Numbered from the stretch's first letter, positions 2,321 through 61,021 are shown. The stretch is DNA of 64,000 nt from Monocercomonoides exilis PA203 (GCA_001643675.2 LSRY02000021.1:992001-1056000), one strand, 5' to 3'. Numbers and translations are program-made. The notes: generated by a model not told the origin, from the letters alone.

Positions 2321-2511
<191 letters not shown>

Positions 2512-4167
2512 TCACATCACAACCTTTGCTGCCAATAAATATCTCTGAGCCAAAAGTTCTCCAAAAATACACCAGCGGGATGGCATTTTCTGTATCACTT
2601 CCATCAAAGCCTCTCATGGAATCCAACGAAATATCTGACAGATGTCCAGATACAAATGGAAGAGAGACATTTGTGATGCTCTTTGTCAAGTTGAATGACT
2701 CAACAAACAGGTCATTTCCATATCTTGCAACATTCGGCTTGTCTTCCTCATAAACAGGGGATGAAATCACAAATGAAGAATACTCATCAATCAGCTTCAG
2801 TGCCATCCCTCCCCCAAACCCAATCTTCCGTTCTTCTGCTGGTGCAGTGCATCCCTTGAATGTGCACGAAATAATATTCATTTGAGTATTCTTTTTCAGC
2901 CGAGCATCAATAGCCCCTCCTCTTCTTTCATCAGCCAGCACTGAGCATCCGTCAAATGAACATTCTTCAATATTTATTTGTGTGTTCCTATATTCATCAT
3001 TGCTATTGTCAATGCTCACACACCCTCCATTTCCAGCTGCTCTTTCCATTTTTGTGAAATTGCTGTTCGTCATATTCATCCACTGAGTGTTCATAAACTC
3101 GGCCTCTGTGCTGCTTCCATGCAATAAGATCAATGGATTTCCACTCAAATTAATTGATGAAACAGATAACGAATCAACAGCCATTTTTCCAGACTCAACT
3201 GACAAGAACAGTAATGTCAAGTCTGATGATAAATATAGAAGAGAAAGATAGCATTGAGATGTGGGAAGTTATGAAGAGGAAGAAGAAATGAAAATGGAGT
3301 GAAGAGGAAGAGAAGGAGGAAAAGAGAACACAAATTTTGATAATTCTGCTTCAACACTTGCTGAAATCATCGTTGAATTGGAAATTGAATTTGAATCAGA
3401 GACTGTCCAGCCACTTTGATCATCATTTCCTCGGATTTCATGTTTCTGTCCAGCAAATGCCAATTCTTCGCTCATCAAAATCATTCCATTCACAACTACT
3501 TTCTTTTCTCCTGTTAATCGTGCGAGTGAGAGCTTCATTGTCAAACAAGGGAATTGGACAATTCCGCAATGAGAATGGTTAGATGCCTCGAAGTTGCTCA
3601 CAAAGATTTCTTCTGGGGTGGGAAGGAGATAGATGCACAGAGGAATGGTCACACTAGCGTTTCCATTCTCATATCCTCTCACCTTGTCAGCAGTATCTGA
3701 CGATGCCGTAACACACGAGATCTTTTGTGATTTTGCAGTCACTTCCAGATTCGGAGAAAGAACAAAGATATCTTTTCCCCACTTAGCCGTGTTTATCCCA
3801 AAGGAAGAAGAGATCAGGAAATTTGGATTTTCATTCAATAGTCGAAGGAGGATTCCTCCGCCAAGTCCATTTGTTGCTGAACAAAAGCATCCATCAAAAG
3901 ATCCGCTTTTCACTTTCACTTCGTTTTCATTCACAATGCACAACATCATCGATCCTCCATTTTCTGAATTTGTGCTTCCACATCCTTCAAAAGTGCTCGA
4001 ATTCAGATTAATGTTTGCTTTGTCATTGGAAAATGACATCACTGTTGCTCCGCTGACTGTTCTTTCAACTCTGTCAAAAGTGAACTCTAAAAGTGTCAAG
4101 GAAATCTCATTTGTTGAAGAAAATGAAAACAAGGAAACTGTGGAGATAGTCTTTGCCCAGTTCACAT

Positions 4168-4407
4168 GGGTGATTCTTTTTGAAAAGTCACAAATATTTA
4201 ATTTACAAATAAATCAAAAATTTCATATTTTGATCAAATTTCGGTTCCCGCTCATGTAACTTTACCAAAGCGGAGTATATAATTTGACAACGCTATTTTA
4301 CACATTCCTGTGAAGTTGTATGAGCGGGAACCGAAATATGATCAAGATATGAAATTTTTGATTTTTTTGAATATTAAACATTTGTGACTTTTCAAAAAGA
4401 ATCACCC
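4168..4407. mobile_element. 240-bp hairpin MITE with GGG termini and 4-bp TSD (ACAT), Sola-like
   Basis: TIRs are gggtgattctttttgaaaagtcacaaa ... tttgtgacttttcaaaaagaatcaccc, with ACAT at 4164-4167 and 4408-4411. Removing the element and one TSD restores the host frame (LINVQNGMFQMEHVNWAKTIS). Confidence 0.93.
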
Positions 4408-6328
4408 ACATGTTCCATCTGAAACATCCCATTCTGAACATTTATCAATTCTGTAGTAAATGCTGTTTCTGAAGATTGCCCATTTCCAGCAGATATGTTC
4501 AGTCTACTAATATGCATCTCTCCCGTTCCAGTAATCTCAAACAGCTTGACCCACGGTTATTCGGATGAAACGAGTCATGCACAAGGACAAAGTCCCTGGC
4601 AGTCAATGTGCCTGTCGAGACCGAAAACAGAGACAAACCTGATTTTTCAGATTCTGTCTGCACAATTGCTGCTAAATCACTTTGGCCGTATATTGTGTAA
4701 GTATTGTCACTGCAGTCTGTGCTTTTGGTCTCTGTAACTGTTCCTGCGAGTATCTCGATATCCTTCACAAAGCTTGGAATCAGCTGAGTGAGGCAGTGGC
4801 TAATTGTGCTGCACGGATGGCCTTTATCTATTCCACATGCATATGTATCTATGGCATTTGGTTGTGTTTCAATCGAAGAAACAAACCTCACAGTTCCAAA
4901 ATCATTGCGAAGCCAATCACTGCGATCAATAATTGAATTGAAATTTGAACTAACTCTGCTTGATGTATTTCTTGTAGAATAGCAACTGGGATCAATGTTG
5001 TTTTCTGAAGAATTTTGAAGAACAAGGTCATGCCCTCCTCCATTACAAGAATTGTTGTGGAAAAAACAGAAATAAAACAAAATTCCCTGATTATTTGCTT
5101 TTATAAGCTCCGAAACAGCGCCTCCTCCACACATTGAATGACAATAGCAAAAAGAACAGTTAGAAATGACTTCTTGATCAGTGCTACTCCAATGTTCAAT
5201 TGCTCCTCCAGTGGATGAGCTTGTATGATTAGCTTTACAAGACTCAAAAAATGAATTGATTATGCAATGTTTCTGTATTTGAGTTTTTACAAAACTGTGA
5301 TCAATTGCCCCAACATCGTTTCCTGAAGAACAGCTACGAAATAAACAATCATCAACCATTGATTGCTTGTTAATATTCTCTGTCATGACTCCGCCGCCCA
5401 CGCTGTCCGTGTTTCCTCGTGCAGAGCATTGAACAAATGTCGAATGGAGGGCATAGGTTCAAACGCGTTCATTTTGCAATTTGCCTTTTTAAACCCTCAA
5501 ATTATAACAAATTAATAGATAATAATTATTTAAAAACTTTTTATGGACCGATTTTTCGAAAAAAATTTTTCTTGTTGAAAAAAATGATTTTTGAAAAATG
5601 ACCCATAAAAACATGAATTTCATTGAAAAATATTCAAATTTAAAAGAAAATGTGATTTTTACGAATCAAAAGTGTTTACATTATTATATACACTTATTTT
5701 ATTTGTTAATTTTATCACAAAAAATATAAATCATAAATAAAAAATTTAATTAAATATCTTTGATCTAACCCACAAGTAAATTATTTATTATATAAAATGT
5801 TGAATATGTTGTTTTGGTTTAAATAGAACCTAAAAGTATGTAATTCGTTCACTTTTATATGTTAATATAAGTATATTATTATATGCGTACTTGTTTTATA
5901 TTGAAAACAGCTTTTATTATCAGTGACACAAACGCATGCATTTTCACTTCCATGTTGTTAAGCTGAAAGACTAAAATTTCAAAATTGGTAGCAATGGAAC
6001 GCAAAAGGTTTTATATAGTTTTTTTCATCAAATAAATATTTGTTTAGCTATTTTCATACGAATTTTTTCTTGTTTTTTGGAATATTAATATTTTTTTGTA
6101 TTAGGCTCGATCATAGCATGCTTAAATAAATCAATGTTGCAAAATTAAACATTACTTACACAAAATAGCTCAATATTGAGAAATAAAAACATGTACTAAA
6201 TAAAAGTTTGGTTTTTTTTACCATTAAAAAAGGAATTGTTTGAATTTGATTTATTTAACTCTAACAGTGAATTTGATGTTGTAATATGTAGAAGCGAGGA
6301 AGAACCATGCCAAACGATGTAGAAATGG

Positions 6329-9300
6329 ATGGAAAACATGGAAAAGGAAAGTGGAATGAAGACAATTCAGATTGAAGGATCAACCATTATAAGAGATTCA
6401 TTCAATGTGTCCAATTATTTAATCAAAAAGGATTCGAAGATGGGAGAAGAGAATGTGAAGGCAATATTGAATTTTGAAAAATCAATTGGAAGCCAACCGG
6501 AATATTTCATGGTGAATGATGATCATCTTGAATTAACCAACATCCAACTTCAACTTGCCTCGGGATTTGAGAACTCAGCCAAAGAAATTGTTTCAAACAA
6601 AGGAGGAGATTTGGTGATAAGTGAATGTTCATTCCATTCAGAAGCAGGAGTGAACAATGGATTTGATTGTGTATTTGTGGATGCAATTGGAGGAAGTGTG
6701 GAAGAGAATGATGGAGGGTCTCACACACAAGATTGGCTTGTTGGATGTTCGGGTCTTCTGACAATGAAGAGACTTTCATTTGTTGTGAAAGGACAGATGA
6801 ATTCAAGAAGAAGTGCATTCATTCACTCAACGTCAACTCTCAGTGTGACGAACTGTTCAGTCTTATTTGAGAGTGGGGCAATGACTGATGGAAAGATAGG
6901 ATACAGCATCATTGATATGGCAGGAGGAGAATTAATTATGAATGGATTTGTGATCGAAGGGTCAGTGACAATGAATGGGAAATCTCCAATAACGCTGACA
7001 AATGGAGCTCAAATGGAGATTTTGAACAGCAGAGTGAGTGGAGTGGAAATGACTGGAGGAAGTGGGAGTGGAGGAGGATGTTTGAATGTGGAGATGAAGG
7101 AAGGAGGAAATGTGAATATTGAAGAAAGCAATTTCTCATCAAGATGCTCAGGTGGAAATGGGATGAAAGGAGGAGGGATGATGATATCAGTGGGGAATGT
7201 GGGGAACTTGGAAATGAAAAATGTGAAATATTCAGGGTGTGAAGTGCCATCAGAGGATAAGGAAGAGAGAGGAAGAGGAATTGGAGGAGGGATATTTGTG
7301 AAGCTGGCAGATGAGATGGGAACATTTGTGATGGAAGGGATGGAATTTGAGGGATGCAATGCCTGGAAAGGGAAGAATATGTTTGCGTCAGGATGGAATC
7401 TGAGAGAAATTGTGAACAAGGAGCACCTGAAATGGGAAATGAATGATGAGGAGTTGGATTTATTGGATGAGTTGTGTGGATGGGAGAGGAAGACGACAGG
7501 AGAGGAGGGGTATGTGATTCCATTGGTTGTGTATTTGTGGGGTAATTGGAGCGGAAATGGGTTTGCTTCGAAAGAGAAAGGAGGAGACTTCAGTGGGTGT
7601 GGATATTCAGAAGCACCATGTTCGTCGATTGATCATCTTGTCTTACTGAGATACGAACCACTTGGAGAAGGGGAATCACACATCAAGATTGTGGGATCAG
7701 GTTCTGTTCAAAAAGCAATATCATTTTTGTTATCATCATCTTCAAAAACTTCAGTTGTATCAATTGAGGGAGAGAAAGAAGGAACAGTTCTGAAAGTGAG
7801 TGAGGGAGGAAGAAACGAAGGCAAAGAAGAAGGAGAAAATAGAGAGGCAATGGTTGCTTCAGAAGTGATCCTCTCATTTGTGAATGTTTCATTTTCTCTC
7901 CCAAATGTGCTTGTCCACTATCTGGCATTCCTCAAATCATCATCAATGAATGGTGCCCTTTCTGTGAAAAGCTGTTCATTTGCTTGTGAGGATCCTTTAA
8001 AAGAAACGTGTTTCTGCTTGGTGAAAGTGGATGGAGGGAGTGTGACAATTGAAGATTGTGCTCTGAAAGAATTCCATTTTTCACAAGGTTTTGTGGAATT
8101 GTCTTCAGATGTGAAAGTGGCAGACGTGATGAATCTGTCAATCACCAACACAAGCATTTCGGGAAGGAGTCTGATTTCGCTCAGTGAATCTGCTCTCTCA
8201 TTAGCAAGCTTATTGAAAGGAGCAACGATGCTGAGAGGCAAAGAGAATGGAGATGGAGTGATGTTGCTGAGCATCAACAGCTCATCATTCACAAGCATCA
8301 CATGCAATGATAGCAGAGCTGCAATTCTGAATGGTGACTCATTTGATGGTGGAATGAAGTGCTGTGTGGAAAAGTGTGTGACGACAAAGTGTCTGAGCGA
8401 GAAGAGCGAAGAGGGAGGATGGATGAAAGTGAGTTTGAGGAGTGGAGGAAGTGAGCTGAAAGTGAGTGGCTGTTCGTTTGGGATGTGCATTTGTTCCACA
8501 GTGAAGGGGAGAGGAGGAGGGCTGATGATTGATGCATCTGGCCTGGGTGAAACACAAGAAGGAACAGAGGATACACCGCCTTTGGGGATAATGATTGAGA
8601 GCACCAGATTCACAATGAATGATGCATTTGTGGGGAAGGATGTGTTCATCCGGTGCAAGTGGATTGAAAAGCAGATCAATGAGAAGCTGTTCTCGCTGGA
8701 CTTCAGCCAGGATGCTCTGAAGTCGAACAACTCGATTTGTGGAAGCGACGAAGAGAAAAGAGATATTGATCTGATCCCGCTGATCACATTCTATTATGGC
8801 CAGCAGGTGTTTGTGGAAGCGAATGGGAGGGATATCAGACAGTGTGGAGAGCAGACGAATCCATGCAAAAGCATCAGCCACGGAGTGCCTCACATTCAAA
8901 AGGGGATCATGAATGTGATTTTTATTGATGGAGAAGGGGACATTGGAGGAGAATGTGTGATTGGAGATTTGAGTGTGAAGTCAATGAAGAAGATGAAGGC
9001 GACAGTCCATTACAATGCAACAATTCAAGAGATGGGAAATGAAGGGGCTGTGATTGTGTTTGTGAATGAGAGTGTGATGGAGAAGTGTTTGTTTGTGTTT
9101 GGAGAGGCATTTGAAGGGGTTGAGGAGAGTGCTTTGAAAGAGAAGGATGGGAGATTGGAGATTTCAGATTGCTTTTTCAGCTCGTCAGCAATGGATCTTG
9201 TGATGAAGAGCATGATTCTTCATGTGGAGAGAGGAGAGATGAAGATGAGCGAAACGTTGTTCAGTGGAATTCATTCAGCTGTGCAACTTCTGTCATTCTG

Positions 9301-9547
9301 TGGAGAATCTTGTGTGTCAATTGCTGAGACACGAATATTGAATATCGAGTGTGAGGGAGAAGTTGTGAGAGTTGGGGGAAAAGCGAAGGCAGAGATGAAG
9401 GAAATGAAGTTTGAGAATATGTCAGTGGCTAATGAAGGAAGCGTGATGAAGATGGATGGAGCTGATAGGGGGTTGTGTGTGCTGAACTGTTCCTTTGTGA
9501 AATGCCGGAGCACAATCAAGAGAGGAAGGATGATAAGGATATGTTAG
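6329..9547 (+). CDS. 1072-aa internal fragment of the Cys-rich surface/receptor-like family (transposon cargo, copy 1)
   Basis: Uninterrupted ORF with CGYSEAPC, CGEQTNPC, GRGGG and GKDVF motifs. Homology continues past both ends (CRSEEEPCQTM* upstream; degenerate to ~9740). No signal peptide or TM segment is evident. Confidence 0.7.
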   Translation: MENMEKESGMKTIQIEGSTIIRDSFNVSNYLIKKDSKMGEENVKAILNFEKSIGSQPEYFMVNDDHLELTNIQLQLASGFENSAKEIVSNKGGDLVISECSFHSEAGVNNGFDCVFVDAIGGSVEENDGGSHTQDWLVGCSGLLTMKRLSFVVKGQMNSRRSAFIHSTSTLSVTNCSVLFESGAMTDGKIGYSIIDMAGGELIMNGFVIEGSVTMNGKSPITLTNGAQMEILNSRVSGVEMTGGSGSGGGCLNVEMKEGGNVNIEESNFSSRCSGGNGMKGGGMMISVGNVGNLEMKNVKYSGCEVPSEDKEERGRGIGGGIFVKLADEMGTFVMEGMEFEGCNAWKGKNMFASGWNLREIVNKEHLKWEMNDEELDLLDELCGWERKTTGEEGYVIPLVVYLWGNWSGNGFASKEKGGDFSGCGYSEAPCSSIDHLVLLRYEPLGEGESHIKIVGSGSVQKAISFLLSSSSKTSVVSIEGEKEGTVLKVSEGGRNEGKEEGENREAMVASEVILSFVNVSFSLPNVLVHYLAFLKSSSMNGALSVKSCSFACEDPLKETCFCLVKVDGGSVTIEDCALKEFHFSQGFVELSSDVKVADVMNLSITNTSISGRSLISLSESALSLASLLKGATMLRGKENGDGVMLLSINSSSFTSITCNDSRAAILNGDSFDGGMKCCVEKCVTTKCLSEKSEEGGWMKVSLRSGGSELKVSGCSFGMCICSTVKGRGGGLMIDASGLGETQEGTEDTPPLGIMIESTRFTMNDAFVGKDVFIRCKWIEKQINEKLFSLDFSQDALKSNNSICGSDEEKRDIDLIPLITFYYGQQVFVEANGRDIRQCGEQTNPCKSISHGVPHIQKGIMNVIFIDGEGDIGGECVIGDLSVKSMKKMKATVHYNATIQEMGNEGAVIVFVNESVMEKCLFVFGEAFEGVEESALKEKDGRLEISDCFFSSSAMDLVMKSMILHVERGEMKMSETLFSGIHSAVQLLSFCGESCVSIAETRILNIECEGEVVRVGGKAKAEMKEMKFENMSVANEGSVMKMDGADRGLCVLNCSFVKCRSTIKRGRMIRIC

Positions 9548-10075
9548 TGCGTGGATGTGCTGATTGGATCGTATGTGTTTGATGGAGAGGAAGGAGATGA
9601 AAAAGAAGGAAAGCATGTAAATGAGGATAAAGGAAGAGATGTACAAATGGGATGGATCTGTTGTGGATGTTGTGAAGAGTTCTGTTTTGATGAAATACAC
9701 AGCAATCTCTAATTCACCAGAAGGTGGAATAACAATGAGTGAAGAAAATATATAGATGAAAGTCATAAACGTTTAAAATTATTTACTGAGACTTTTTCAC
9801 TTTGCAGAAATTACAATTAACATTTTTTCTAATTGTTTATCGCAATACAATAACTTTATTTGATAATTTAAATGATTTCTCATCTAGTATTGTATTATTT
9901 TGAAGACATATAAATTTTTTTAATTATTATATTGAGAAAATAATTAATAGAAGATAAATGTTTTCAATGAAAAATTAATATTTTCAAAGCAGTTTTGATA
10001 TTTGTAACAAAAAATATTCCCATAACTTGATTATCAAAATTTAAATTGAAAAATATTTTATACAAATTCTGTCAC

Positions 10076-11761
10076 ATGGAGACTCAATATAACAAAGAAG
10101 ATATTCAAAAATTAACTTTTTGTGAATTTCTTATTATGTCAAATGGAAATAACAAATTAGCTCTAGATATTTTGTCATCGATGGGATGCATTAAAAAGTC
10201 ATTCAAATGCTGGAAATGCGAAAAAGAGATGAATCTGACAATGAAAAAACCCGAATGCGACTATTACACTTTTTAAATGTTCGTCGTGTGGAAAACTTTA
10301 CAGTTGGAATCATGAATCTTTGTTTATGGATTTCAATTTATCGCCTTACTACGTCATGACACTGTTTTATCACTTTTGGTACAAACATTCTGTGAATGAG
10401 GTTGTGATAAAAACAAAACTATCATAGAACACAGTCTTAAGCTTTTTCAAAAGATTACGTAATATCTGCTGTTATCTTGAAGCGCTTGATACCGAAAAAA
10501 TAGGAAAAAACAGAAAAGTTGAAATGGATGAAACACTGATTCACAAAAGAAAAAATGGGGTGGGAAGAGTTAAAGAACAGCAGTGGCTGTGGGGAGCAGT
10601 TGAAAGAAAAGTGGAAGGAAAGCCGCAAAAATTAAAACTTGAATTTGTACCAGATAGAACAGAAGAAACATTGTTATATTTCATTTAGAAAAACATTGAT
10701 ATATCTTCGGAAATTTACAGTGACAAATGGTCTGCTTATAGTGGAATAAAGCGATGTGGATATACGCATTACAGTATTAATCATTCAGAGCATTTTTCTG
10801 ATCCAGCTGACAAAACAATTCATTCACAAACTATAGAAAGCATGTGGTCGCATTTAAAACATCTTCTCCCAATCAGAGGAAGAACCTATGAGAAAACAAA
10901 AGAATATACCTACGAATTTCAGTACAGATTTAATAATAAAGGAACAGTTCACAGTTTTCTCGATGATATTTCTAAAATAAAAAAAGGGACTTTGATAATT
11001 ACATGGAGTCTTATAATAAATGTGAAATTAAAACGAAAACGGCATTAACAAAAGAAAAAAAGTTCAAATTATCATCATACATTCTGAGAAAAGAAGAAAA
11101 GAAGAAAAAAGATGAAGATGCAACATTATTGGATGAAAACGAGCTTGATGCTTTCTTTAAGGAGAAGAAAAAATTACAAAAAATAGGATCCAAAGTGATT
11201 ACTGAAAAGGGGAAAAGAAGATTAATCGACGAATCTGATGATGAACGCAATGATGCTAAAGATGACATATCAAACGACGATAATCATTCCAATTTATTCG
11301 ATGATAAAGAAGATGAAGAAAAGGAGAGAAATGATAAGGAAAATGAAAATACACAAAACAAAAAACAAGAAAAAAATGATGAATCAGGCTAAAGCAGTGC
11401 CGTCATTCCAAAGCTTCAAAATACTGAGGAAAACAGCGAAATGGATGAAAATGATGAACAAAAAACAGATGACTGTTATGAGGATCTTCTTGAATTTGAT
11501 GTGAATGATTAAAAACCACGGAAAAGAAAAATAAAAAGAAAAAGGTCAAGCAATGGAAGATTTTGCAAAAAAGATGAAAACCAACTTGCATCAAATTTAG
11601 AAAAAGAAACAGAAAGTTTTTGCGAAAAAAAAGAAAATAAAATTAGTGAGATAAAGAAAAAAGAAAAGAAAAAGTTGTTTTCAATAATGAATCAAAAAAC
11701 TTTGAGAAGTCAAACAAATGCATTAAACAAAGGAACGCAACAATTCCCAATTTCACTATAA
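10076..11761 (+). pseudogene. Merlin/IS1595 (ISXO2-like) DDE transposase A, disrupted
   Basis: Zn ribbon CWKC...CSSC; VEMDET, IYSDKWSAY, SQTIESMWS and YEFQYRFN motifs; K/E-rich tail ending QFPISL*. In-frame stops at ~10425, ~10686, 11390 and further downstream. Confidence 0.92.
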
Positions 11762-12479
11762 CAGGCAAAGGTGTATTTATAGCACATTCCCAATCCTTGG
11801 ATATTCTTTAAAACATTGTGATAAATATAAAGTATATTTAATAACAAAACATTTGTATGGACTGGAATTTTGATATTCATTTTGATCCTTGAGAAAAAAC
11901 AATTTTTAAAAATCACCCATAAATCTGAGTAATTTTACAAATTTTTGATAAAAATTGATAATTTTAAAATATCAAGCAGCTGAGAGGTCATTTATTATTA
12001 TATACTCTTATTTTATTTATGATTTTTCAAAAAATAAAACATTTTAAAAATAAATTATAAAATTTTAATATTTTGATCAACCCCACAATTATATTTTTAA
12101 TAACCAAAAAATTAGAATTTGCTTTCTTTCATCAAGAATTGAACCTTCGTTTGCGAACATATAACAAATCATATATATGAATACAGTTTTAAAGTGTGTG
12201 ATGAATAATTATCTATATATCATTCAAATCTTTATGTATTTTGATTATGATTTTTAATATGAAAATTTTTGTGCAGTTTGAGGATGTTTATGTTACACAA
12301 TGATGATCATGAATAAAGAAGCTTTGTTGATGCCATGAAAGTATGAATTTCATATTAATTAACTTATTTATAGAATATTTTTTACGAATTGCGTCATTTA
12401 TTTATTTATTTTTTACTGAATCAATGCAGTATGTTAATTACAAGAAGATATTTATAGAAGCAACAACTACTGCACAAAT

Positions 12480-14746
12480 ATGAAAGATGGAATGCGTTTT
12501 GCAGCAAAGGAAAGAGGGTTTCTTGATTTTTCATTTGTGGGGATGAAATTCAATACAAACACAGCAAAAGTCGGAAACGATATTTTCATCGAATGTTATA
12601 ACATCGAATGATAGATCAATATGTGCAGAGTAAGTGTTCTTTGAGTTTATCATGAAAATATTTTCATCTAATTTAATTTATATTTGATGTTAAAATATCA
12701 AAGCATTTTGTTCAATACACATCGAGAACTTCATCCGGTGGAAGTTACGTATTGCAAGGAGGCAGTTTGATTGGGCCATCATTTGTCAAATCACCATTCG
12801 TGATAGCTTTCTCTGTTTTTATATGAGAGCAACAACTTTTCAATTATTATGAACACAAGAAGTGGTGAAGGAGGTGCTGCGAAAGTGACATTAAAAATGA
12901 CGAAGTTTTGGTTATAAAATCAACAAATGCATCATCCTGCACACTTTCATTTAGCAATGGAAAAGGAGGATTCTTGTGTTTGGATTGTCAAAATTGTTTG
13001 TATCAAAAGCCATTTCTTTTGGAAGGTGTTTCGTTTGCAAACAACAATGCAGCCATTGGAAAGAATGTGTTCATTTTGGGAAAGGATTTCAACAGTTCTG
13101 TGACAAATGACTCATTCAAGTTTGATTATTCATCAATGAAAGGCGATAATAATTTGTTTGTTGGAAGTGATAGTCATTATTTAAACAAAGACTTGTTCAT
13201 GTTTTTGATTCCATTCAGCTCATTTGAGATATTTATTTCATCGAGTGGATTTGATGTTGCACGTTGAGGAAGTGAAGAAGAGCCATGCTTCACAATATGG
13301 AAAGGGATGGAAAACATGGTAAAGAAGGAGTTTGTAAAGATGAGTATTGGTGTTGTGATGATTGTCGACTGTGAGTTTGTAACTGAAATGAGCAAGGAAG
13401 GAATTGGATCTTTTGTGTCTGATGTGTGGGTTTGGAGCATGAAAGGCGGAGAGATGCAGATGGATCGTGTGACAAAAAGAGGGATTGAGTTTTGTGGAGG
13501 AGGGATATTAAGTGTGGAGGGAGGTAGATCGGAGCTGGAGATTATCACAGCAAAGGATGTGAAGAAAGATGGAGAAGGTGTGATTGTTGGGGAGAAGTGG
13601 TCAGAGATGGAAATGAGTGAGATTACGATAAAACGATGAGAGATGAGAATGGGGAGCGGGGTTGTTGCAAAACGAGGAAAGAGATTCAGAGTGTGATACG
13701 ATTAAATGTTCTCAGGGTGCGGATTTAAGGAAGGGAATGGGAGGGAGATGAAGTGTGAGGTGGCAGAAGGCGTGGTGGTTGTTGAGAGCAGCACATTTGA
13801 AGGATTCTCGGCAAGAAAGAATGAAGAAAAAGGAGGAGAGATTTTCATAAATGCTGTTGGAGAGAGCTGTTAAAATTGCTTTGAAGTCTAGGGGTGTGTT
13901 AATGAAAGGAGCAGGGCAAGTGAAGGGAAAGACGTGTATGTGGTGTGTGAGGATTCATAAGCAATAATTTTTCCGAAACGGTTTGAGATAGAGCTTGTGG
14001 GCAAGGATGGGAAGGACAAAGTGGAGCTGTGAGGGAGGGACAATGGAAGATTTGCAAGGGAGAGTGTTGGTTTGCTTCTGTTTCTGATGAAGTTCAGCGG
14101 AGATGATGTGCATGTGTCGGAAGGGAGTGGGATGGATGTTCTGGGGTTTGGGAAAGAGGAGATTGCATGTGAGACGCTTTGGTGTGGGATTGGGCATCCG
14201 AAGGAAGAGAGTGGGCAAGAAGAGCAGAAGGTTGTGGTGAGCGACAGATGTGTGGTGAGTGACTGTTTTGTGTTTGAGCGAAGAACAATGATATGTAGGC
14301 CTGATACAGAAAAAGCAAAGCAGGCGAAGATGCATGTTGAATCGGAGCTGAAGAGTGATGGATGTGAAGCTGTAACGTGAAGAAGTGAGTGCCTGAGTGT
14401 GAGGATGTTTGTGATAAGTCTTCTGCAGGTGTTTGGAACTGGGCAAAGCATGGTTCTGGGAACAGAAGGCGGGGTGGTGAATGTTTCGAATGTGGGGTTT
14501 TAGTGGAGAGAGAGCGGGGTTGTTGGATACAGGATTGTGAGCACGTTGACGGGGATGCTGAATGTGCAGAACTGCTCTGTCAGGGAAGCAACGTTTGAGA
14601 ATGCGCCATTTGCTGTGCATTCATGTGTGGTTGTGGAGAGCTTGGAGGCGGATGGAGTTACAAGTGAGGGGAGCAGATCAGAGGGAGTGATGGAGATTGA
14701 GCTGAGTAGAGAAGAGAAGGCTATGTTGAGAATTGCAAGTGCTTAA
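12480..14746 (+). pseudogene. Mosaic of degenerate Cys-rich receptor-family fragments
   Basis: Motifs GKGGFLCLDC, GKNVFILG, R*GSEEEPCFT and GKDVYVVC, with many stops and frameshifts. Confidence 0.7.
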
Positions 14747-15349
14747 GGATGATGTTGATCTGTGAATGAAAAAAGAGTGTATGTATATGTGTGTGGAAGT
14801 TTGAGAAATTAAAACAGTTTCAGGAGAGGAACATCAAAGAACAATGTTTAAAGGAGAACCGACTTGAGTTCACATTTGTGAAATGAACAGTGGATGAAAG
14901 TTGTGTAATAACAATCTGGGTTATTTGAGGAAGGGTGTGGAGATGGAGAGTGAAGTGGAAACCGGTGAAAAGGAACTTGAAAAGAAAAAAGGAGAGTGAA
15001 GCTTGTGAAGTGTTACGATGAGGCGAAACTTAATACAATTAATAGTGAGATGATATTTTTGTGAAGCACTTGAATAACAAACTCTTTAATTAAGAAACAA
15101 CAATTTTTTGTCGATTATGAAATAAATGTGATTTTGTAAGAAGAAACAATCTGTTTTGATATTTCAAAATCGAAATTCAAAGATAATCAATGAATGTCAT
15201 TTCATTAACGCAATTCCTACGCTTGAGAATAACCTTTTCATTTATATCGATTATGTTCATGAAAAGCAAAGGAATTTCTTTTTTATCTTGTATTGTTATG
15301 TTGTGTCATTGTCAAAAAGTGAAGTGAAATGGTGTTGTGATAAATTTAT

Positions 15350-16891
15350 CTACAAACTAATAGGAGATTGCTCGGTTCCAATATTTGTTGATTTAATAAA
15401 ACTTCGAAGTATTTTTCGATTATGAATTGCATTTGTTTTATCTTTTTTTTTTTTCTTCATTTCTTCAATCTTTCTCTCCTTTTTTTCACAAAACTTTATG
15501 GTTTCAAACTCCATCGTTTTCAACTGTTGGCTATCGTTATTTTTCAGAAATCTTCCGTCACATGATCTATATCTTATCTTTTTCTTCTTTCTTGCAGTAT
15601 TGCAATCTGAGTCTGATGAGTATATATCATCTCCAGTTTCAACTTTTGTTTCTGTTTCTTTCTCTTCTTTCTCTTCTTTCTCTTCTTTCTCTTCTTTTTC
15701 TTCTTTTTCTTCTTTCTTTTCTTCTTCTTCTTCCTCTTCTTTATCTTCAATTTTTCTTCTTTTGAAATTTTCTGTTTCATTTGTTTCAATCAATTTCTTT
15801 GATAATCTTTTTTTCTTTAACATTTCATCAAGTTCATTTTCATCAACCATTTCATAATTTCTTCTTTTTTTCATTTCCTCTTTTTTCAAATAATAAGAAG
15901 ACAATTTGAATTTTCTTTCTTTATTCAAAACACTTATCATATTTGCAGCACTTTCGTCATTGGCACGTAAAAAAACATCCAAACTTCTCTTATCAATCTT
16001 TGATAATTATTTCATGAAAGTTGTTGGAGTCAGTCTATTGTTATATCGATACTGAAACTCATAGTCATATTCCTTTGTCTTTAAATATGTTCTCCCTCGT
16101 TTTGGAATATGATTTTTCAGATGAGACCATATGCTTTCAATTGCTTGTGTGAAAACAGTTGGATTTTCCGGTTTGACAAAATTAAGAGTTTGATTTACGC
16201 TGTCTATTGTGAAACCATTTTCACTGATGCAATTATATGCTGACCATTTATCAGACATGATCGTTGCTGATCTTTCAATGTTTTTTTTAACGAAATATAA
16301 AATCGTGTCTGCTTTTCTATCAGGAAGAAATTCAACAATCAGTTTTTGAGGCTTTCCTTTTTCCTTTCTTTCAATAACACCCCATAACCACTGCTGTTCT
16401 TTGCATCTCCCAACACCGTTCTTTCTTTTGTGTATTAAAGTTTCATCTATTTCCACTATTCGATCTTTTCCGATTTTTTCCATTTCGAATGTTTCAAAAT
16501 AACAGCATATTCTTCTCATCTTTTCATTAAATTTCACAACAGTTTTGTTTGTAATATTCAGCTCTAAAGTGACTTCCTTTATTGAATGCTTGTACCAAAA
16601 ATGATATAATAGAGATGCAATTTTCAAAGGTGATAAGTGAAATTCCATGAATATTGAATCATAACACCAACTGAAAATTCTTCCACATTTTGAACATCTG
16701 TATGCATAGTAATCAATTTCTTTTTTGTACAGCTTCAGCTCCATCTTTCTGTCGCATTTCCAACATTTCCTATATTGTCTGATCAATCAGTATTTAGATA
16801 GCAATTCAACTGCAAGATGGTTTTTGTTGTTCGATCGAATAGTAAACTCACTGAAAGTTAATTCTTTTTCCAATAATTCGTTCTCACTCAT
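15350..16891 (-). pseudogene. Merlin/IS1595 DDE transposase B (514 codons, two in-frame stops)
   Basis: ATG at 16891; CWKC...CSKC; VEIDET, IMSDKWSAY, TQAIESIWS and YEFQYRYN motifs. Stops at 16787-16789 (TGA) and 16007-16009 (TAA). ORF 15350-15982 is the in-frame K/E-rich tail ending QSPISL*. Confidence 0.93.
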
Positions 16892-17514
16892 GTATTTGAT
16901 TAAATAGTTCTGCAAATGATCAAAAATTTAAAATTTTGGATATTTATAATGGAAAATTTTCAAAAAAAAACATGCATTTGGAATTTGATTTTTCACTTCT
17001 TTTTGACATAAAAAGCAAATATTTTTTTTTAAATAATTTGCATAATTTTTTTCATGGTCTCATTACGAAAAAACAAAAATAAATAATAAAAAATAAACAT
17101 GATCACAGCATTGTCTTTTTTTATAAGAACAATGAGCGCACAATTACAAAAGGTTAATCATGTGTTATTATTTTGTTCATTAATAAAAAAGTTTGGATTT
17201 GTTTTCCATTTTGTTTAATTTCAATTGTTTGCTCATCACTGCACTCATTTTTTTCCAAACATATAAAAACACATTAGAATCATATTTTCTTTTGTTTCAT
17301 ATTATCATTCTGGTCTTTCTCCTAAAGAATTGTTTGGAAAGAATATTTTCTTCTCAACATTTTTCCATCCGCACTCCACACATATGATAATACTCGAGTT
17401 ATGCATTCTTCCTTTAAGTCTCTGTTTTAACTGTTATCGCGAATCATCATGAAAAGAATTGTGCCCGATGGAATGCTCTTGAATCATACCCGATTCACAT
17501 CCATCATCATATCC

Positions 17515-18600
17515 CTAACTTCCACATTCGGTGTGTGCTCTCCACAACTTTCTTAACTCCACAACCGCACTCTCTCCATTTTGAATCTTATCTCCCGCCA
17601 CCTCTGCCTCATACTCCCCAAACGGAATATTCAGTGTCAGACACTCCCACAGCATCATCCCAATCGAGAATGAAACAGATTCTTTTGTTGCTCCCATCTT
17701 CTTGTTCATCAGCAACTCTGGAGCCTTCCACCTCAAACACTCTTTTCTGTTGTATTCATCATCATCAAATGCTGAAGAAGGAAGGGAGTCCTCTTCATCA
17801 TCATCACTGGCAGATGTCACAACAGTCGATGAAGAGATGGACGATGAATCGGAATCATCAGAAGAGAAGTCTGAATGCATAACAATGCAGATGACCATAT
17901 GTTCCGAGAACAGAACAATGTGCGGACTCAGATTGGAAAGAGAAGAAAGTGGATTTTCCATTTCATCAAATGAATGAAGTGCTCCATTCGCCACCCAAAA
18001 CAGAATCTGTGCAGCTGTCATCTCTCTTTCTTTCAAAGAGCCAATCGCCATCTCCTTTTTCTCATTCCTTCCATGAAGCAGCATGAACATCGAATCCCTC
18101 AGATCCACAATCAGCTTCTCATGAGGCGATGAACAGGCCATTGGATCCACCAGATTCGACATCGACGAAGTGGTGGGGCACGTATCCTCTCCTCGAACAA
18201 ATGTTGAATCTGAATCAGTTGTTGAAGTGGATGAGATGGATGGTGACGGTGTTCGCTTTCTTGTATCTTCTTCCTTCTCATCAGCTTTCTCCAGTGCCCA
18301 TTCTGGAATCTTGTCAGAATCTCTCCCCAAAATATATTCTGTGGAGCCATTTTCACTCAACAAATACTCTTCTGACTCAGAATACTGCATCTCCTTTCCA
18401 TTCATTCTCTTTTTGATCCTCTCCTCATTCTTCTTTTCTGCTTCCCTCTCTGCTCTCCTCCACTGATCTTCAGGAGACATTTCCATCGTTATCATTTCAA
18501 ATGCCTTCGGGTCCTTCTTTACTGTGTCATTTACAATCTCTCTCAGATCTTTGTTCTCTTTCTTTGCTTTTCTCCATCGAATGGTCACAATAATTGTGTA
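17515..18600 (-). pseudogene. Cytoplasmic C-terminal fragment of the receptor family with a degenerate tyrosine-kinase-like domain
   Basis: Begins at a post-TM basic patch (IRWRKAKK). LRWKAPELL...SVSFSIGMMLWECLTLNIPF matches kinase subdomains VIII-IX. No HRD, DFG or Gly-loop is present. Confidence 0.75.
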
Positions 18601-18621
18601 GTTCTGATGAATTGTAATAAA

Positions 18622-18867
18622 TCAAATCAGATCTGTATCATTTGTGCTATTGCACAAATCCCTTCCATTTATTGCATCACTGCGATTGTAATTGTTTTCT
18701 AGAAAATCAAACTGAAATTGTTTTTCATTGATCTGTGATGCGATGTTGAAGCATTCGATGAAAATATCATTCCCGACTCTTGCAGTGTTTGCACTGAATT
18801 TCATCCCCACAAATGAAAAATCAAGAAACCCTCTTTCCTTTGCTGCAAAACGCATTCCATCTTTCAT
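18622..18867 (-). pseudogene. Short Cys-rich receptor-family fragment spanning the inner boundary of the right arm
   Basis: FSANTARVGNDIFIEC...QFQFDF motif; paralogous to 12480-12620. Confidence 0.7.
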
Positions 18868-19585
18868 ATTTGTGCAGTAGTTGTTGCTTCTATAAATATC
18901 TTCTTGTAATTAACATACTGCATTGATTCAGTAAAAAATAAATAAATAAATGACGCAATTCGTAAAAAATATTCTATAAATAAGTTAATTAATATGAAAT
19001 TCATACTTTCATGGCATCAACAAAGCTTCTTTATTCATGATCATCATTGTGTAACATAAACATCCTCAAACTGCACAAAAATTTTCATATTAAAAATCAT
19101 AATCAAAATACATAAAGATTTGAATGATATATAGATAATTATTCATCACACACTTTAAAACTGTATTCATATATATGATTTGTTATATGTTCGCAAACGA
19201 AGGTTCAATTCTTGATGAAAGAAAGCAAATTCTAATTTTTTGGTTATTAAAAATATAATTGTGGGGTTGATCAAAATATTAAAATTTTATAATTTATTTT
19301 TAAAATGTTTTATTTTTTGAAAAATCATAAATAAAATAAGAGTATATAATAATAAATGACCTCTCAGCTGCTTGATATTTTAAAATTATCAATTTTTATC
19401 AAAAATTTGTAAAATTACTCAGATTTATGGGTGATTTTTAAAAATTGTTTTTTCTCAAGGATCAAAATGAATATCAAAATTCCAGTCCATACAAATGTTT
19501 TGTTATTAAATATACTTTATATTTATCACAATGTTTTAAAGAATATCCAAGGATTGGGAATGTGCTATAAATACACCTTTGCCTG

Positions 19586-21271
19586 TTATAGTGAAATTGG
19601 GAATTGTTGCGTTCCTTTGTTTAATGCATTTGTTTGACTTCTCAAAGTTTTTTGATTCATTATTGAAAACAACTTTTTCTTTTCTTTTTTCTTTATCTCA
19701 CTAATTTTATTTTCTTTTTTTTCGCAAAAACTTTCTGTTTCTTTTTCTAAATTTGATGCAAGTTGGTTTTCATCTTTTTTGCAAAATCTTCCATTGCTTG
19801 ACCTTTTTCTTTTTATTTTTCTTTTCCGTGGTTTTTAATCATTCACATCAAATTCAAGAAGATCCTCATAACAGTCATCTGTTTTTTGTTCATCATTTTC
19901 ATCCATTTCGCTGTTTTCCTCAGTATTTTGAAGCTTTGGAATGACGGCACTGCTTTAGCCTGATTCATCATTTTTTTCTTGTTTTTTGTTTTGTGTATTT
20001 TCATTTTCCTTATCATTTCTCTCCTTTTCTTCATCTTCTTTATCATCGAATAAATTGGAATGATTATCGTCGTTTGATATGTCATCTTTAGCATCATTGC
20101 GTTCATCATCAGATTCGTCGATTAATCTTCTTTTCCCCTTTTCAGTAATCACTTTGGATCCTATTTTTTGTAATTTTTTCTTCTCCTTAAAGAAAGCATC
20201 AAGCTCGTTTTCATCCAATAATGTTGCATCTTCATCTTTTTTCTTCTTTTCTTCTTTTCTCAGAATGTATGATGATAATTTGAACTTTTTTTCTTTTGTT
20301 AATGCCGTTTTCGTTTTAATTTCACATTTATTATAAGACTCCATGTAATTATCAAAGTCCCTTTTTTTTATTTTAGAAATATCATCGAGAAAACTGTGAA
20401 CTGTTCCTTTATTATTAAATCTGTACTGAAATTCGTAGGTATATTCTTTTGTTTTCTCATAGGTTCTTCCTCTGATTGGGAGAAGATGTTTTAAATGCGA
20501 CCACATGCTTTCTATAGTTTGTGAATGAATTGTTTTGTCAGCTGGATCAGAAAAATGCTCTGAATGATTAATACTGTAATGCGTATATCCACATCGCTTT
20601 ATTCCACTATAAGCAGACCATTTGTCACTGTAAATTTCCGAAGATATATCAATGTTTTTCTAAATGAAATATAACAATGTTTCTTCTGTTCTATCTGGTA
20701 CAAATTCAAGTTTTAATTTTTGCGGCTTTCCTTCCACTTTTCTTTCAACTGCTCCCCACAGCCACTGCTGTTCTTTAACTCTTCCCACCCCATTTTTTCT
20801 TTTGTGAATCAGTGTTTCATCCATTTCAACTTTTCTGTTTTTTCCTATTTTTTCGGTATCAAGCGCTTCAAGATAACAGCAGATATTACGTAATCTTTTG
20901 AAAAAGCTTAAGACTGTGTTCTATGATAGTTTTGTTTTTATCACAACCTCATTCACAGAATGTTTGTACCAAAAGTGATAAAACAGTGTCATGACGTAGT
21001 AAGGCGATAAATTGAAATCCATAAACAAAGATTCATGATTCCAACTGTAAAGTTTTCCACACGACGAACATTTAAAAGTGTAATAGTCGCATTCGGGTTT
21101 TTTCATTGTCAGATTCATCTCTTTTTCGCATTTCCAGCATTTGAATGACTTTTTAATGCATCCCATCGATGACAAAATATCTAGAGCTAATTTGTTATTT
21201 CCATTTGACATAATAAGAAATTCACAAAAAGTTAATTTTTGAATATCTTCTTTGTTATATTGAGTCTCCAT
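19586..21271 (-). pseudogene. Merlin transposase A, mirrored copy
   Basis: Reverse complement of 10076-11761. It shares the nonsense codons but lacks the two homopolymer frameshifts. Confidence 0.92.
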
Positions 21272-21799
21272 GTGACAGAATTTGTATAAAATATTTTTCA
21301 ATTTAAATTTTGATAATCAAGTTATGGGAATATTTTTTGTTACAAATATCAAAACTGCTTTGAAAATATTAATTTTTCATTGAAAACATTTATCTTCTAT
21401 TAATTATTTTCTCAATATAATAATTAAAAAAATTTATATGTCTTCAAAATAATACAATACTAGATGAGAAATCATTTAAATTATCAAATAAAGTTATTGT
21501 ATTGCGATAAACAATTAGAAAAAATGTTAATTGTAATTTCTGCAAAGTGAAAAAGTCTCAGTAAATAATTTTAAACGTTTATGACTTTCATCTATATATT
21601 TTCTTCACTCATTGTTATTCCACCTTCTGGTGAATTAGAGATTGCTGTGTATTTCATCAAAACAGAACTCTTCACAACATCCACAACAGATCCATCCCAT
21701 TTGTACATCTCTTCCTTTATCCTCATTTACATGCTTTCCTTCTTTTTCATCTCCTTCCTCTCCATCAAACACATACGATCCAATCAGCACATCCACGCA

Positions 21800-24700
21800 C
21801 TAACATATCCTTATCATCCTTCCTCTCTTGATTGTGCTCCGGCATTTCACAAAGGAACAGTTCAGCACACACAACCCCCTATCAGCTCCATCCATCTTCA
21901 TCACGCTTCCTTCATTAGCCACTGACATATTCTCAAACTTCATTTCCTTCATCTCTGCCTTCGCTTTTCCCCCAACTCTCACAACTTCTCCCTCACACTC
22001 GATATTCAATATTCGTGTCTCAGCAATTGACACACAAGATTCTCCACAGAATGACAGAAGTTGCACAGCTGAATGAATTCCACTGAACAACGTTTCGCTC
22101 ATCTTCATCTCTCCTCTCTCCACATGAAGAATCATGCTCTTCATCACAAGATCCATTGCTGACGAGCTGAAAAAGCAATCTGAAATCTCCAATCTCCCAT
22201 CCTTCTCTTTCAAAGCACTCTCCTCAACCCCTTCAAATGCCTCTCCAAACACAAACAAACACTTCTCCATCACACTCTCATTCACAAACACAATCACAGC
22301 CCCTTCATTTCCCATCTCTTGAATTGTTGCATTGTAATGGACTGTCGCCTTCATCTTCTTCATTGACTTCACACTCAAATCTCCAATCACACATTCTCCT
22401 CCAATGTCCCCTTCTCCATCAATAAAAATCACATTCATGATCCCCTTTTGAATGTGAGGCACTCCGTGGCTGATGCTTTTGCATGGATTCGTCTGCTCTC
22501 CACACTGTCTGATATCCCTCCCATTCGCTTCCACAAACACCTGCTGGCCATAATAGAATGTGATCAGCGGGATCAGATCAATATCTCTTTTCTCTTCGTC
22601 GCTTCCACAAATCGAGTTGTTCGACTTCAGAGCATCCTGGCTGAAGTCCAGCGAGAACAGCTTCTCATTGATCTGCTTTTCAATCCACTTGCACCGGATG
22701 AACACATCCTTCCCCACAAATGCATCATTCATTGTGAATCTGGTGCTCTCAATCATTATCCCCAAAGGCGGTGTATCCTCTGTTCCTTCTTGTGTTTCAC
22801 CCAGGCCAGATGCATCAATCATCAGCCCTCCTCCTCTCCCCTTCACTGTGGAACAAATGCACATCCCAAACGAACAGCCACTCACTTTCAGCTCACTTCC
22901 TCCACTCCTCAAACTCACTTTCATCCATCCTCCCTCTTCGCTCTTCTCGCTCAGACACTTTGTCGTCACACACTTTTCCACACAGCACTTCATTCCACCA
23001 TCAAATGAGTCACCATTCAGAATTGCAGCTCTGCTATCATTGCATGTGATGCTTGTGAATGATGAGCTGTTGATGCTCAGCAACATCACTCCATCTCCAT
23101 TCTCTTTGCCTCTCAGCATCGTTGCTCCTTTCAATAAGCTTGCTAATGAGAGAGCAGATTCACTGAGCGAAATCAGACTCCTTCCCGAAATGCTTGTGTT
23201 GGTGATTGACAGATTCATCACGTCTGCCACTTTCACATCTGAAGACAATTCCACAAAACCTTGTGAAAAATGGAATTCTTTCAGAGCACAATCTTCAATT
23301 GTCACACTCCCTCCATCCACTTTCACCAAGCAGAAACACGTTTCTTTTAAAGGATCCTCACAAGCAAATGAACAGCTTTTCACAGAAAGGGCACCATTCA
23401 TTGATGATGATTTGAGGAATGCCAGATAGTGGACAAGCACATTTGGGAGAGAAAATGAAACATTCACAAATGAGAGGATCACTTCTGAAGCAACCATTGC
23501 CTCTCTATTTTCTCCTTCTTCTTTGCCTTCGTTTCTTCCTCCCTCACTCACTTTCAGAACTGTTCCTTCTTTCTCTCCCTCAATTGATACAACTGAAGTT
23601 TTTGAAGATGATGATAACAAAAATGATATTGCTTTTTGAACAGAACCTGATCCCACAATCTTGATGTGTGATTCCCCTTCTCCAAGTGGTTCGTATCTCA
23701 GTAAGACAAGATGATCAATCGACGAACATGGTGCTTCTGAATATCCACACCCACTGAAGTCTCCTCCTTTCTCTTTCGAAGCAAACCCATTTCCGCTCCA
23801 ATTACCCCACAAATACACAACCAATGGAATCACATACCCCTCCTCTCCTGTCGTCTTCCTCTCCCATCCACACAACTCATCCAATAAATCCAACTCCTCA
23901 TCATTCATTTCCCATTTCAGGTGCTCCTTGTTCACAATTTCTCTCAGATTCCATCCTGACGCAAACATATTCTTCCCTTTCCAGGCATTGCATCCCTCAA
24001 ATTCCATCCCTTCCATCACAAATGTTCCCATCTCATCTGCCAGCTTCACAAATATCCCTCCTCCAATTCCTCTTCCTCTCTCTTCCTTATCCTCTGATGG
24101 CACTTCACACCCTGAATATTTCACATTTTTCATTTCCAAGTTCCCCACATTCCCCACTGATATCATCATCCCTCCTCCTTTCATCCCATTTCCACCTGAG
24201 CATCTTGATGAGAAATTGCTTTCTTCAATATTCACATTTCCTCCTTCCTTCATCTCCACATTCAAACATCCTCCTCCACTCCCACTTCCTCCAGTCATTT
24301 CCACTCCACTCACTCTGCTGTTCAAAATCTCCATTTGAGCTCCATTTGTCAGCGTTATTGGAGATTTCCCATTCATTGTCACTGACCCTTCGATCACAAA
24401 TCCATTCATAATTAATTCTCCTCCTGCCATATCAATGATGCTGTATCCTATCTTTCCATCAGTCATTGCCCCACTCTCAAATAAGACTGAACAGTTCGTC
24501 ACACTGAGAGTTGACGTTGAGTGAATGAATGCACTTCTTCTTGAATTCATCTGTCCTTTCACAACAAATGAAAGTCTCTTCATTGTCAGAAGACCCGAAC
24601 ATCCAACAAGCCAATCTTGTGTGTGAGACCCTCCATCATTCTCTTCCACACTTCCTCCAATTGCATCCACAAATACACAATCAAATCCATTGTTCACTCC

Positions 24701-25018
24701 TGCTTCTGAATGGAATGAACATTCACTTATCACCAAATCTCCTCCTTTGTTTGAAACAATTTCTTTGGCTGAGTTCTCAAATCCCGAGGCAAGTTGAAGT
24801 TGGATGTTGGTTAATTCAAGATGATCATCATTCACCATGAAATATTCCGGTTGGCTTCCAATTGATTTTTCAAAATTCAATATTGCCTTCACATTCTCTT
24901 CTCCCATCTTCGAATCCTTTTTGATTAAATAATTGGACACATTGAATGAATCTCTTATAATGGTTGATCCTTCAATCTGAATTGTCTTCATTCCACTTTC
25001 CTTTTCCATGTTTTCCAT
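21800..25018 (-). CDS. 1072-aa Cys-rich receptor-family fragment (cargo, copy 2)
   Basis: Translation is identical to 6329-9547. Confidence 0.7.
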   Translation of the reverse strand: MENMEKESGMKTIQIEGSTIIRDSFNVSNYLIKKDSKMGEENVKAILNFEKSIGSQPEYFMVNDDHLELTNIQLQLASGFENSAKEIVSNKGGDLVISECSFHSEAGVNNGFDCVFVDAIGGSVEENDGGSHTQDWLVGCSGLLTMKRLSFVVKGQMNSRRSAFIHSTSTLSVTNCSVLFESGAMTDGKIGYSIIDMAGGELIMNGFVIEGSVTMNGKSPITLTNGAQMEILNSRVSGVEMTGGSGSGGGCLNVEMKEGGNVNIEESNFSSRCSGGNGMKGGGMMISVGNVGNLEMKNVKYSGCEVPSEDKEERGRGIGGGIFVKLADEMGTFVMEGMEFEGCNAWKGKNMFASGWNLREIVNKEHLKWEMNDEELDLLDELCGWERKTTGEEGYVIPLVVYLWGNWSGNGFASKEKGGDFSGCGYSEAPCSSIDHLVLLRYEPLGEGESHIKIVGSGSVQKAISFLLSSSSKTSVVSIEGEKEGTVLKVSEGGRNEGKEEGENREAMVASEVILSFVNVSFSLPNVLVHYLAFLKSSSMNGALSVKSCSFACEDPLKETCFCLVKVDGGSVTIEDCALKEFHFSQGFVELSSDVKVADVMNLSITNTSISGRSLISLSESALSLASLLKGATMLRGKENGDGVMLLSINSSSFTSITCNDSRAAILNGDSFDGGMKCCVEKCVTTKCLSEKSEEGGWMKVSLRSGGSELKVSGCSFGMCICSTVKGRGGGLMIDASGLGETQEGTEDTPPLGIMIESTRFTMNDAFVGKDVFIRCKWIEKQINEKLFSLDFSQDALKSNNSICGSDEEKRDIDLIPLITFYYGQQVFVEANGRDIRQCGEQTNPCKSISHGVPHIQKGIMNVIFIDGEGDIGGECVIGDLSVKSMKKMKATVHYNATIQEMGNEGAVIVFVNESVMEKCLFVFGEAFEGVEESALKEKDGRLEISDCFFSSSAMDLVMKSMILHVERGEMKMSETLFSGIHSAVQLLSFCGESCVSIAETRILNIECEGEVVRVGGKAKAEMKEMKFENMSVANEGSVMKMDGADRGLCVLNCSFVKCRSTIKRGRMIRIC

Positions 25019-26149
25019 CCATTTCTACATCGTTTGGCATGGTTCTTCCTCGCTTCTACATATTACAACATCAAATTCACTGTTAGAGTTAAATAAATCA
25101 AATTCAAACAATTCCTTTTTTAATGGTAAAAAAAACCAAACTTTTATTTAGTACATGTTTTTATTTCTCAATATTGAGCTATTTTGTGTAAGTAATGTTT
25201 AATTTTGCAACATTGATTTATTTAAGCATGCTATGATCGAGCCTAATACAAAAAAATATTAATATTCCAAAAAACAAGAAAAAATTCGTATGAAAATAGC
25301 TAAACAAATATTTATTTGATGAAAAAAACTATATAAAACCTTTTGCGTTCCATTGCTACCAATTTTGAAATTTTAGTCTTTCAGCTTAACAACATGGAAG
25401 TGAAAATGCATGCGTTTGTGTCACTGATAATAAAAGCTGTTTTCAATATAAAACAAGTACGCATATAATAATATACTTATATTAACATATAAAAGTGAAC
25501 GAATTACATACTTTTAGGTTCTATTTAAACCAAAACAACATATTCAACATTTTATATAATAAATAATTTACTTGTGGGTTAGATCAAAGATATTTAATTA
25601 AATTTTTTATTTATGATTTATATTTTTTGTGATAAAATTAACAAATAAAATAAGTGTATATAATAATGTAAACACTTTTGATTCGTAAAAATCACATTTT
25701 CTTTTAAATTTGAATATTTTTCAATGAAATTCATGTTTTTATGGGTCATTTTTCAAAAATCATTTTTTTCAACAAGAAAAATTTTTTTCGAAAAATCGGT
25801 CCATAAAAAGTTTTTAAATAATTATTATCTATTAATTTGTTATAATTTGAGGGTTTAAAAAGGCAAATTGCAAAATGAACGCGTTTGAACCTATGCCGAT
25901 TTCCCATTCGCATTTATCTTCTTCAAACCTTATTGCTCCTATTATATTGATGCACTGGTCAAAACTTTGTAAAAATGGTGTCTAACAGCATTTAAACAGC
26001 AGTCTGTGTAAAAATCAAATTTAATTGCTCGCATGCAACTTGTCCCTCAGTCCCTGATTAGATGCTACAATTACAATATTCAAACTTTTTGGAACTTGCT
26101 TTCAAAGTCAAGGACAATTTAGTTATCTTTGCTGAGTGGAGACAATGCC

Positions 26150-32058: not shown

Positions 32059-32116
32059 AAGGCAGACAATTTATTGAAGAATTGAAAATTTCCGTTTTAT
32101 TCGAATCGAAGATCTG

Positions 32117-33115: not shown

Positions 33116-33394
33116 TAGAGAGTGGAGCGAATGATATCATATGTTGTGAATTGGTTCATTTGATCAGAAGAGAGCAAAAGAAGATGTTTCATTCAGCTCA
33201 AAAATGGAAAGATTTAGCTGTCACGCTCGTCTTAATATTCACATAAGCTTCTATGTTTGTAACTTGCTACTAAATAATCGAACCTTGTTTTAACCAATGA
33301 AACAGATACTTGAAAAGATGATCAATGAAGAATAAAGTATCTTACTTGTTTTCGAAACATCTTTGAAAAGAATTAACTGTAAATATAATAATTG

Positions 33395-43103: not shown

Positions 43104-43343
43104 TCTAAATTTTTTTGAAAAGTTCTTTTTGTTTAATTTTCAAATTTAATAAAATTTTCATATTTTCATCAATTTTTTGTTCCCACGTTTTAAACTTCTA
43201 TAAAATGAAAATAAAAACATTGTTGAGGTTTTGATATCCAATTAAGGAAAGTTTAATCCGTGGAAACAGAAATTTGATCGAAATATTAAAATTTTATATT
43301 ATTTGAAAATTAAACAAAAGGAACTTTTCAAAAAAATTTACCC
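43104..43343. mobile_element. Diverged ~240-bp hairpin MITE of the 4168 family
   Basis: Runs aatttttttgaaaagttc ... gaacttttcaaaaaaatttaccc; the internal aacagaaatttgatc motif is shared with the other copies. Confidence 0.75.

Positions 43344-60976: not shown

Positions 60977-60979
<3 letters not shown>

Positions 60980-61020
<41 letters not shown>
60980..61020. repeat. poly(A) tract, about 41 nt
   Basis: Read directly. Confidence 0.95.

Positions 61021-61021
<1 letters not shown>

Follow-up and report, generated by a model that had tools for sequence, protein, structure and literature searches.

The locus analysed here raises the question of whether a 20.4-kb structure with long mirrored arms and pieces of host receptor genes is one giant transposon or the product of several separate events. 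The window, C16:992001-1056000 of Monocercomonoides exilis, is a stretch of 64,000 nucleotides whose first base is position 1 in what follows, and the genome searched was the 82.3-Mb, 101-contig assembly. The structure was found to be a composite (5450-25897, no strand assigned) of a family-A Merlin and a nested family-B Merlin, with mirrored arms and no TSD.

Comparison of the window with itself by BLAST revealed an inverted repeat, 5450-12620 against 25897-18727, that is 99.8% identical over 7172 bp. Base-by-base comparison confirmed two near-identical inverted arms of 7103 bp with the termini proposed in an earlier reading made from the sequence only (hereafter the sequence-only reading): a left arm (5450-12552, plus strand), the probable donor copy, and a right arm (18795-25897, minus strand), its mirror copy. 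Two 1-bp homopolymer indels (10270 and 10978) and no substitution were found between the arms over 7103 bp (<0.042%). Beyond this stretch, identity to the mirror is about 83% for about 70 bp (12553-12620, plus strand); here one receptor motif is present in two paralogous versions, and the end of the latest copying tract falls within it. At both indel sites the short-read contigs of runs X2-X4 have the right-arm form; hence both indels are assembly errors of the left arm, frameshift differences between the arms are rejected, and no true difference between the 7103-bp arms was found after the read-contig check. Read variants in 9500-12552 could be assigned to two sister copies, J13 or J59, except at one unassigned site (12356 T>A).

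The left end of the structure (5450-6328, plus strand), with the terminus GGCATAGG, represents about 0.9 kb common to all family-A copies. The termini of the clade are GGCATAGGT, and the TIRs start with GG. The terminal 18-mer had 55 matches in the genome against none for a control, mostly as facing pairs. For a wider 10-mer there were 245 matches, compared with 112 for the control; in the 100 matches listed, 32 facing pairs and seven back-to-back pairs were present. Family A comprised 27 paired copies with sizes from 1.7 to 20.4 kb and, across the clade, arms of 0.3-7.1 kb. The TSD of 8-9 bp expected of Merlin elements was present among the family-A sisters, where 16 of the 27 copies had a perfect 8-bp TSD, two had a 7/8 match and in one more the TSD was shifted by a terminal change. 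It was absent from the nested element and from the 20.4-kb copy, whose outer flanks agree at 3/8 positions and around which no TSD of 7-10 bp was found. In 23 of the 27 A copies, the first 300 bp of the two ends were identical at 99% or more, a level reached by only three of the 351 between-copy pairs. Overall, A ends are about 100% identical within a copy, with a median of 91% between copies, and within-copy end identity is unusable for dating these elements.

Receptor-family fragments were found between the ends of many other A copies, and in this respect the proposal of a cargo-carrying family stands. In four A copies of 5.4 kb (L015, L018, L020 and L021) this receptor piece is found again, but no transposase; with a host fragment between TIRs with a TSD, in several copies, they qualify as Pack-TYPE elements. 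Shorter A copies are deletion derivatives. In the sister J13 (C13:173742-184510), which is flanked by a perfect TSD, the arms measure 4.4 kb and are 99.9% identical, and the transposase frame is open; the order is end, receptor piece, transposase and mirrored receptor arm.

Comparison with J13 revealed that the 20.4-kb structure consists of two nested Merlins of different families and is not one transposon. Identity to J13 covers 5450 to exactly 11763, the base before a second Merlin terminus that starts at 11764 and is mirrored at 19583. J13 has no insertion at this site, and its own mirrored arm begins at a distance of about 48 bp. Since the site is empty in J13 and identity ends at 11763, B was inserted into a J13-like A element. 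The entire spacer, together with 0.8 kb on the inner side of each arm, belongs to the nested family-B Merlin (11764-19583, 7820 bp, no strand assigned). A second Merlin transposase, further ectodomain pieces and a kinase C-terminus had been read in the spacer, and all three are present; however, they are not the spacer of a single element, as the spacer belongs wholly to nested B. The B transposase (15350-16891, minus strand) keeps its DDE residues and has stops at codons 35 and 295. One B cargo (12474-15070, plus strand) consists of decayed receptor ectodomain pieces common to B sisters, and the other (17515-18588, minus strand) is a receptor-family cytoplasmic tail with a kinase C-lobe and without a TM segment. 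The 8-bp target of the B insertion (11756-11763, plus strand) has a mirrored copy at 19584-19591 and no direct repeat. Both ends of nested B have a terminal T-to-A change that is absent from most B sisters. These sisters, of 9.2-9.5 kb (C76:92963-102443, C20:99983-109466, C35:8767-18151 and C91:1344346-1353500) and 15.1 kb, have the same layout of end, kinase piece, transposase, opposed ectodomain piece and end, the kinase in the 15.1-kb sister (C64:335497-350618) being placed by coordinates only. In this largest sister, about 7.5 kb lies between the left end and the kinase and, judged by coordinates only, may hold most of a receptor gene.

The family-A transposase (10076-11392, plus strand) keeps D151/D216/E254 and has stops at codons 117 and 204; its mirror copy (19955-21271, minus strand) has the same two stops. 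Broken transposases were read with X at the stop positions. The DDE_Tnp_IS1595 profile (PF12762) was above the cut-off in all three transposases, with the DDE triad intact, and the Merlin identity first proposed, also from the GG ends, is borne out. Two in-frame stops are present in each of the three, so no open frame is left in the composite, which is now non-autonomous. The A transposase is 96% identical in amino acids to the open ORF of J13, and the region differs from J13 by 2.9%; B and A transposases are 52% identical, and the nearest transposases outside the clade are 28-32% identical. By its sequence the 20.4-kb copy belongs to the Merlin family. With no TSD and no intact transposase, movement of the whole as one transposed unit is not supported. 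A further A-type transposase region, 83% identical and with an open frame, was observed at C16:1373573-1375503. Equal-scoring inverted pairs of Merlin transposases were also observed at C19:624302/625146, C25:1119886/1149312 and C80:178071/180449, which suggests more mirrored composites.

Next to the transposase, each arm holds the 1072-codon ORF noticed earlier, at 6329-9547 (plus strand) and, as a mirror copy, at 21800-25018 (minus strand). This cargo ORF is an intronless mosaic of mid-ectodomain pieces from a receptor/TKL-pseudokinase family, the largest gene family of the M. exilis genome (PMC6759080). It had been called Cys-rich; cysteine represents only 3.5% of its residues, hence it is not notably so. 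Full-length relatives are single-pass proteins of 2,200-2,900 aa with a kinase C-lobe, and the cargo ORF matches none of the N-terminus, TM segment and kinase of such members. No Pfam or PDB match was found for it; the homologues nearest to it are named proteins of M. exilis. No RNA run contained the stretch. Matches to one subfamily cover residues 1-129 and those to another cover residues 124-1072, and identity to J13 along the ORF fluctuates from 79 to 96%.

For bases 7168-9105, identity to five genes on C5 is 88%, higher than to the 5.4-kb sisters, and a sixth gene there aligns at 86% along more of the sequence; no clade end was found near those C5 genes among the matches listed. The best host matches of the cargo cluster chromosome-locally (C5, C18 and C20), again without clade ends nearby among the matches listed. 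The cargo resembles host receptor genes more closely than it does the cargo of sisters; hence the element borrows from the receptor family. As far as sequence comparison goes, the pattern fits host-to-element patching of the cargo by receptor paralogues. Borrowing from the host family is supported; the system that duplicates and shuffles the host family, as the sequence-only reading had it, is not, and neither building nor reshuffling of that family by the element is supported. The element itself cuts a host receptor gene in the left flank (241-5449, minus strand), and a kinase probably of the same gene (C16:990547-991545) lies just before the window. When 40 of 1254 candidates were scored, the best match of the B kinase piece (88%, against 81-83% for the other 38) was a same-strand kinase about 18 kb away, which probably belongs to this interrupted gene. 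Some annotated receptor genes are transposon cargo, with P0001 (MONOS_3978), 80% identical to the cargo and assigned to the contig of J13, as a warning case. Unclassified repeats that overlap the kinase family are a puzzle in the M. exilis genome (PMC8767320), and the clade accounts for part of this overlap.

Taken as a whole, the structure was probably assembled stepwise, from a J13-type A element, through insertion of B and left-to-right copying of an arm, with recurrent patching. The substrate was a family-A Pack-Merlin of the type that J13 represents. As the empty site in J13 shows, a family-B Pack-Merlin then entered this element between the transposase and the right arm of A, about 48 bp short of the latter. 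The A arms on the outside and the B arms on the inside could pair as nested inverted repeats, which would leave 1.9 kb of the left side, the transposase, mismatched with about 50 bp of the right side, and a break on the right side would be repaired from the left template through intra-element gene conversion or a template switch. Such a repair would double the A transposase, turn the direct TSD of B into a mirrored one and leave a tract ending in receptor homology at 12552/12620. Most likely, the left end of A, the cargo and an already dead transposase were copied rightward by repair between paired inverted repeats; the left-to-right direction rests on one sister, J13. Arm-to-arm copying of this kind, the pattern of which is found family-wide, would recur, and host paralogues would patch the cargo. 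Both arms have the same two TAG stops and the same B terminal T-to-A change; hence the copying postdates these changes. The occurrence of no substitution in the arms, against 2.9% from J13, indicates that the copying was recent or recurrent. The missing outer TSD lies outside what the copying explains.

Two further loci replicate this nesting and mirroring. J59 (C59:411965-427696; L027 and L028) is a 15.7-kb A composite with 6.4-kb arms, each containing an A end, cargo and half an A transposase, together with a MITE-like piece of 324 bp and one end of a nested element. L012 (C49:550012-554300) is an A copy in mirrored flanks (300/300) with no TSD, and these flanks match the inner element of J59 at 95%. 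An ORF for a DUF5906/VapE-like helicase lies in the inner element of J59, which is possibly a mobile element of the helicase type or a virus-like one. At the locus studied here, a nested insertion adds another inverted-repeat pair to the first, and what lies between the two pairs would then be copied across. A traceable case of such nesting-guided arm growth is what this locus adds. It can only tentatively be suggested that the clade is a standing exchange platform for the largest gene family of M. exilis, in which nested insertions lengthen the arms, copying homogenises the receptor pieces, tracts pass between cargo and intact genes in both directions, and some B elements move near-whole receptor genes.

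Three other explanations of the arms were weighed. According to the first, which we consider unlikely, two arms came to lie head to head around B through two separate A copies, a local inverted hop or ectopic recombination. The missing TSD would then be accounted for, as in chimeric Galileo copies that lack a TSD for the same reason (PMC3573991), but the duplicate also takes in the end of B and its 8-bp target, and no mirror of these would be expected from a hop of A. Moreover, a search for a reciprocal partner end with either flank 8-mer found none, and the similarity of any other A copy to the end of this unit does not exceed 95%. Joined to each other, the flanks read in frame, but the alignment with the nearest homologue does not extend across the join, and the right flank begins with 245-280 bp of unique sequence. 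A 13-nt mirrored motif common to the flanks is possibly a repair scar; 105 of 20,000 random pairs scored equally high.

An assembly artefact, with two loci brought together by a right arm that arose as a duplicate or through polishing, is very unlikely, and the composite is very probably a real structure in the genome. Suspicion arises from the absent TSD, from flanks whose continuity is unproven and from the assembly itself, made from Nanopore reads with Canu and ten Pilon rounds (PMC8767320). The reads speak on both sides. Contigs of X1 and X4 begin at 12523, 30 nt ahead of the first arm difference, which is the signature of a fork, one that B sisters could also give. In X2 there is no fork at 12523, and a contig bridges the junction of left arm and spacer (12479-13020). 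Contig depth does not measure copy number; in the deep runs it favours two arms along most stretches, and in X2 and X4 one AT-rich part of the arm is at the unique level. Against an artefact, both flanks and both spacer ends are differing unique sequence, independent homopolymer errors distinguish the arms, near-identical ends occur family-wide, and J13 combines its 4.4-kb arms with a perfect TSD. Finally, a giant Merlin moving as a 20-kb unit that duplicates and shuffles receptor modules has precedent in cargo-carrying A sisters of up to 10.8 kb with perfect TSDs and in the possible near-complete receptor gene of the 15.1-kb B sister, but is highly improbable for a unit with no identical second copy in the genome, no TSD, dead transposases, a nested B, a broken mid-gene piece as cargo and best host matches in local clusters away from listed clade ends.

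Merlin families F1-F7 of M. exilis are reported to be 1.4-1.9 kb long, with 23-29-bp TIRs and no cargo, and reported Merlin TIRs span 24-462 bp (PMC8101967). The present clade shares with F1-F7 the DDE_Tnp_IS1595 domain with its DDE triad, GG termini, an 8-bp TSD and the genome, whereas its termini, arm lengths and receptor cargo differ. Identity with F1-F7 was rejected on the terminus and the size, and the clade motifs were not found in the available part of the supplements of PMC8101967. Arm length in Merlin is thereby extended from less than 0.5 kb to 7.1 kb. In Galileo, of the P superfamily, TIRs extend up to 1.26 kb by recruiting element spacer (PMC3573991). As in extended-TIR Galileo copies and Drosophila Foldback (PMC3573991), the TIRs of our composite would have grown by taking in internal sequence, with repair from the other TIR; unlike in Galileo, the arms have acquired cargo from host genes, a transposase over its full length and one end of the nested element. 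The composite is likewise Foldback-like in that a spacer separates two long, near-identical inverted arms, but no internal tandem subrepeat array was found in the arms by self-BLAST. As in plant Pack-MULE and Pack-TYPE elements (reviewed in PMC13317346), non-autonomous TIR elements with host gene fragments and deletion derivatives occur; unlike these, the elements are Merlins of a protist with one dominant cargo family, and the cargo lies inside inverted arms and beside a transposase. No description of a Pack-Merlin was found in the literature searched. The elements form an undescribed Merlin clade in which Pack-type cargo is combined with extreme TIR extension, and the locus is a Pack-type Merlin that provides a dated, replicated case of long-TIR growth.

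Other elements were observed alongside. A second element of the GGCATAGGT clade (26744-30739, 3996 bp) has 312-bp perfect arms, a 7/8 TSD and decayed N-terminal receptor-like cargo, and sits in a dispersed repeat. At L017:1053-6424, an A copy houses a different Merlin, whose arms of 1742 bp are 99.7% identical and contain a 30-bp tandem repeat. Two DDE_1 (pogo/Tc1-type) ORFs (43810-46668) lie within or near the inverted repeat pair 44794/50234. A palindromic MITE family of about 240 bp occurs at 4167-4408, 43095-43351, 48848-49090 and 51946-52202, as well as in both arms of J59. Further inverted repeats of the window are those of a 1.0-kb element (32113-33119), whose arms of 376 bp are 99.5% identical, and an inverted pair of 1.4 kb (55750-63264) with 88% identity.
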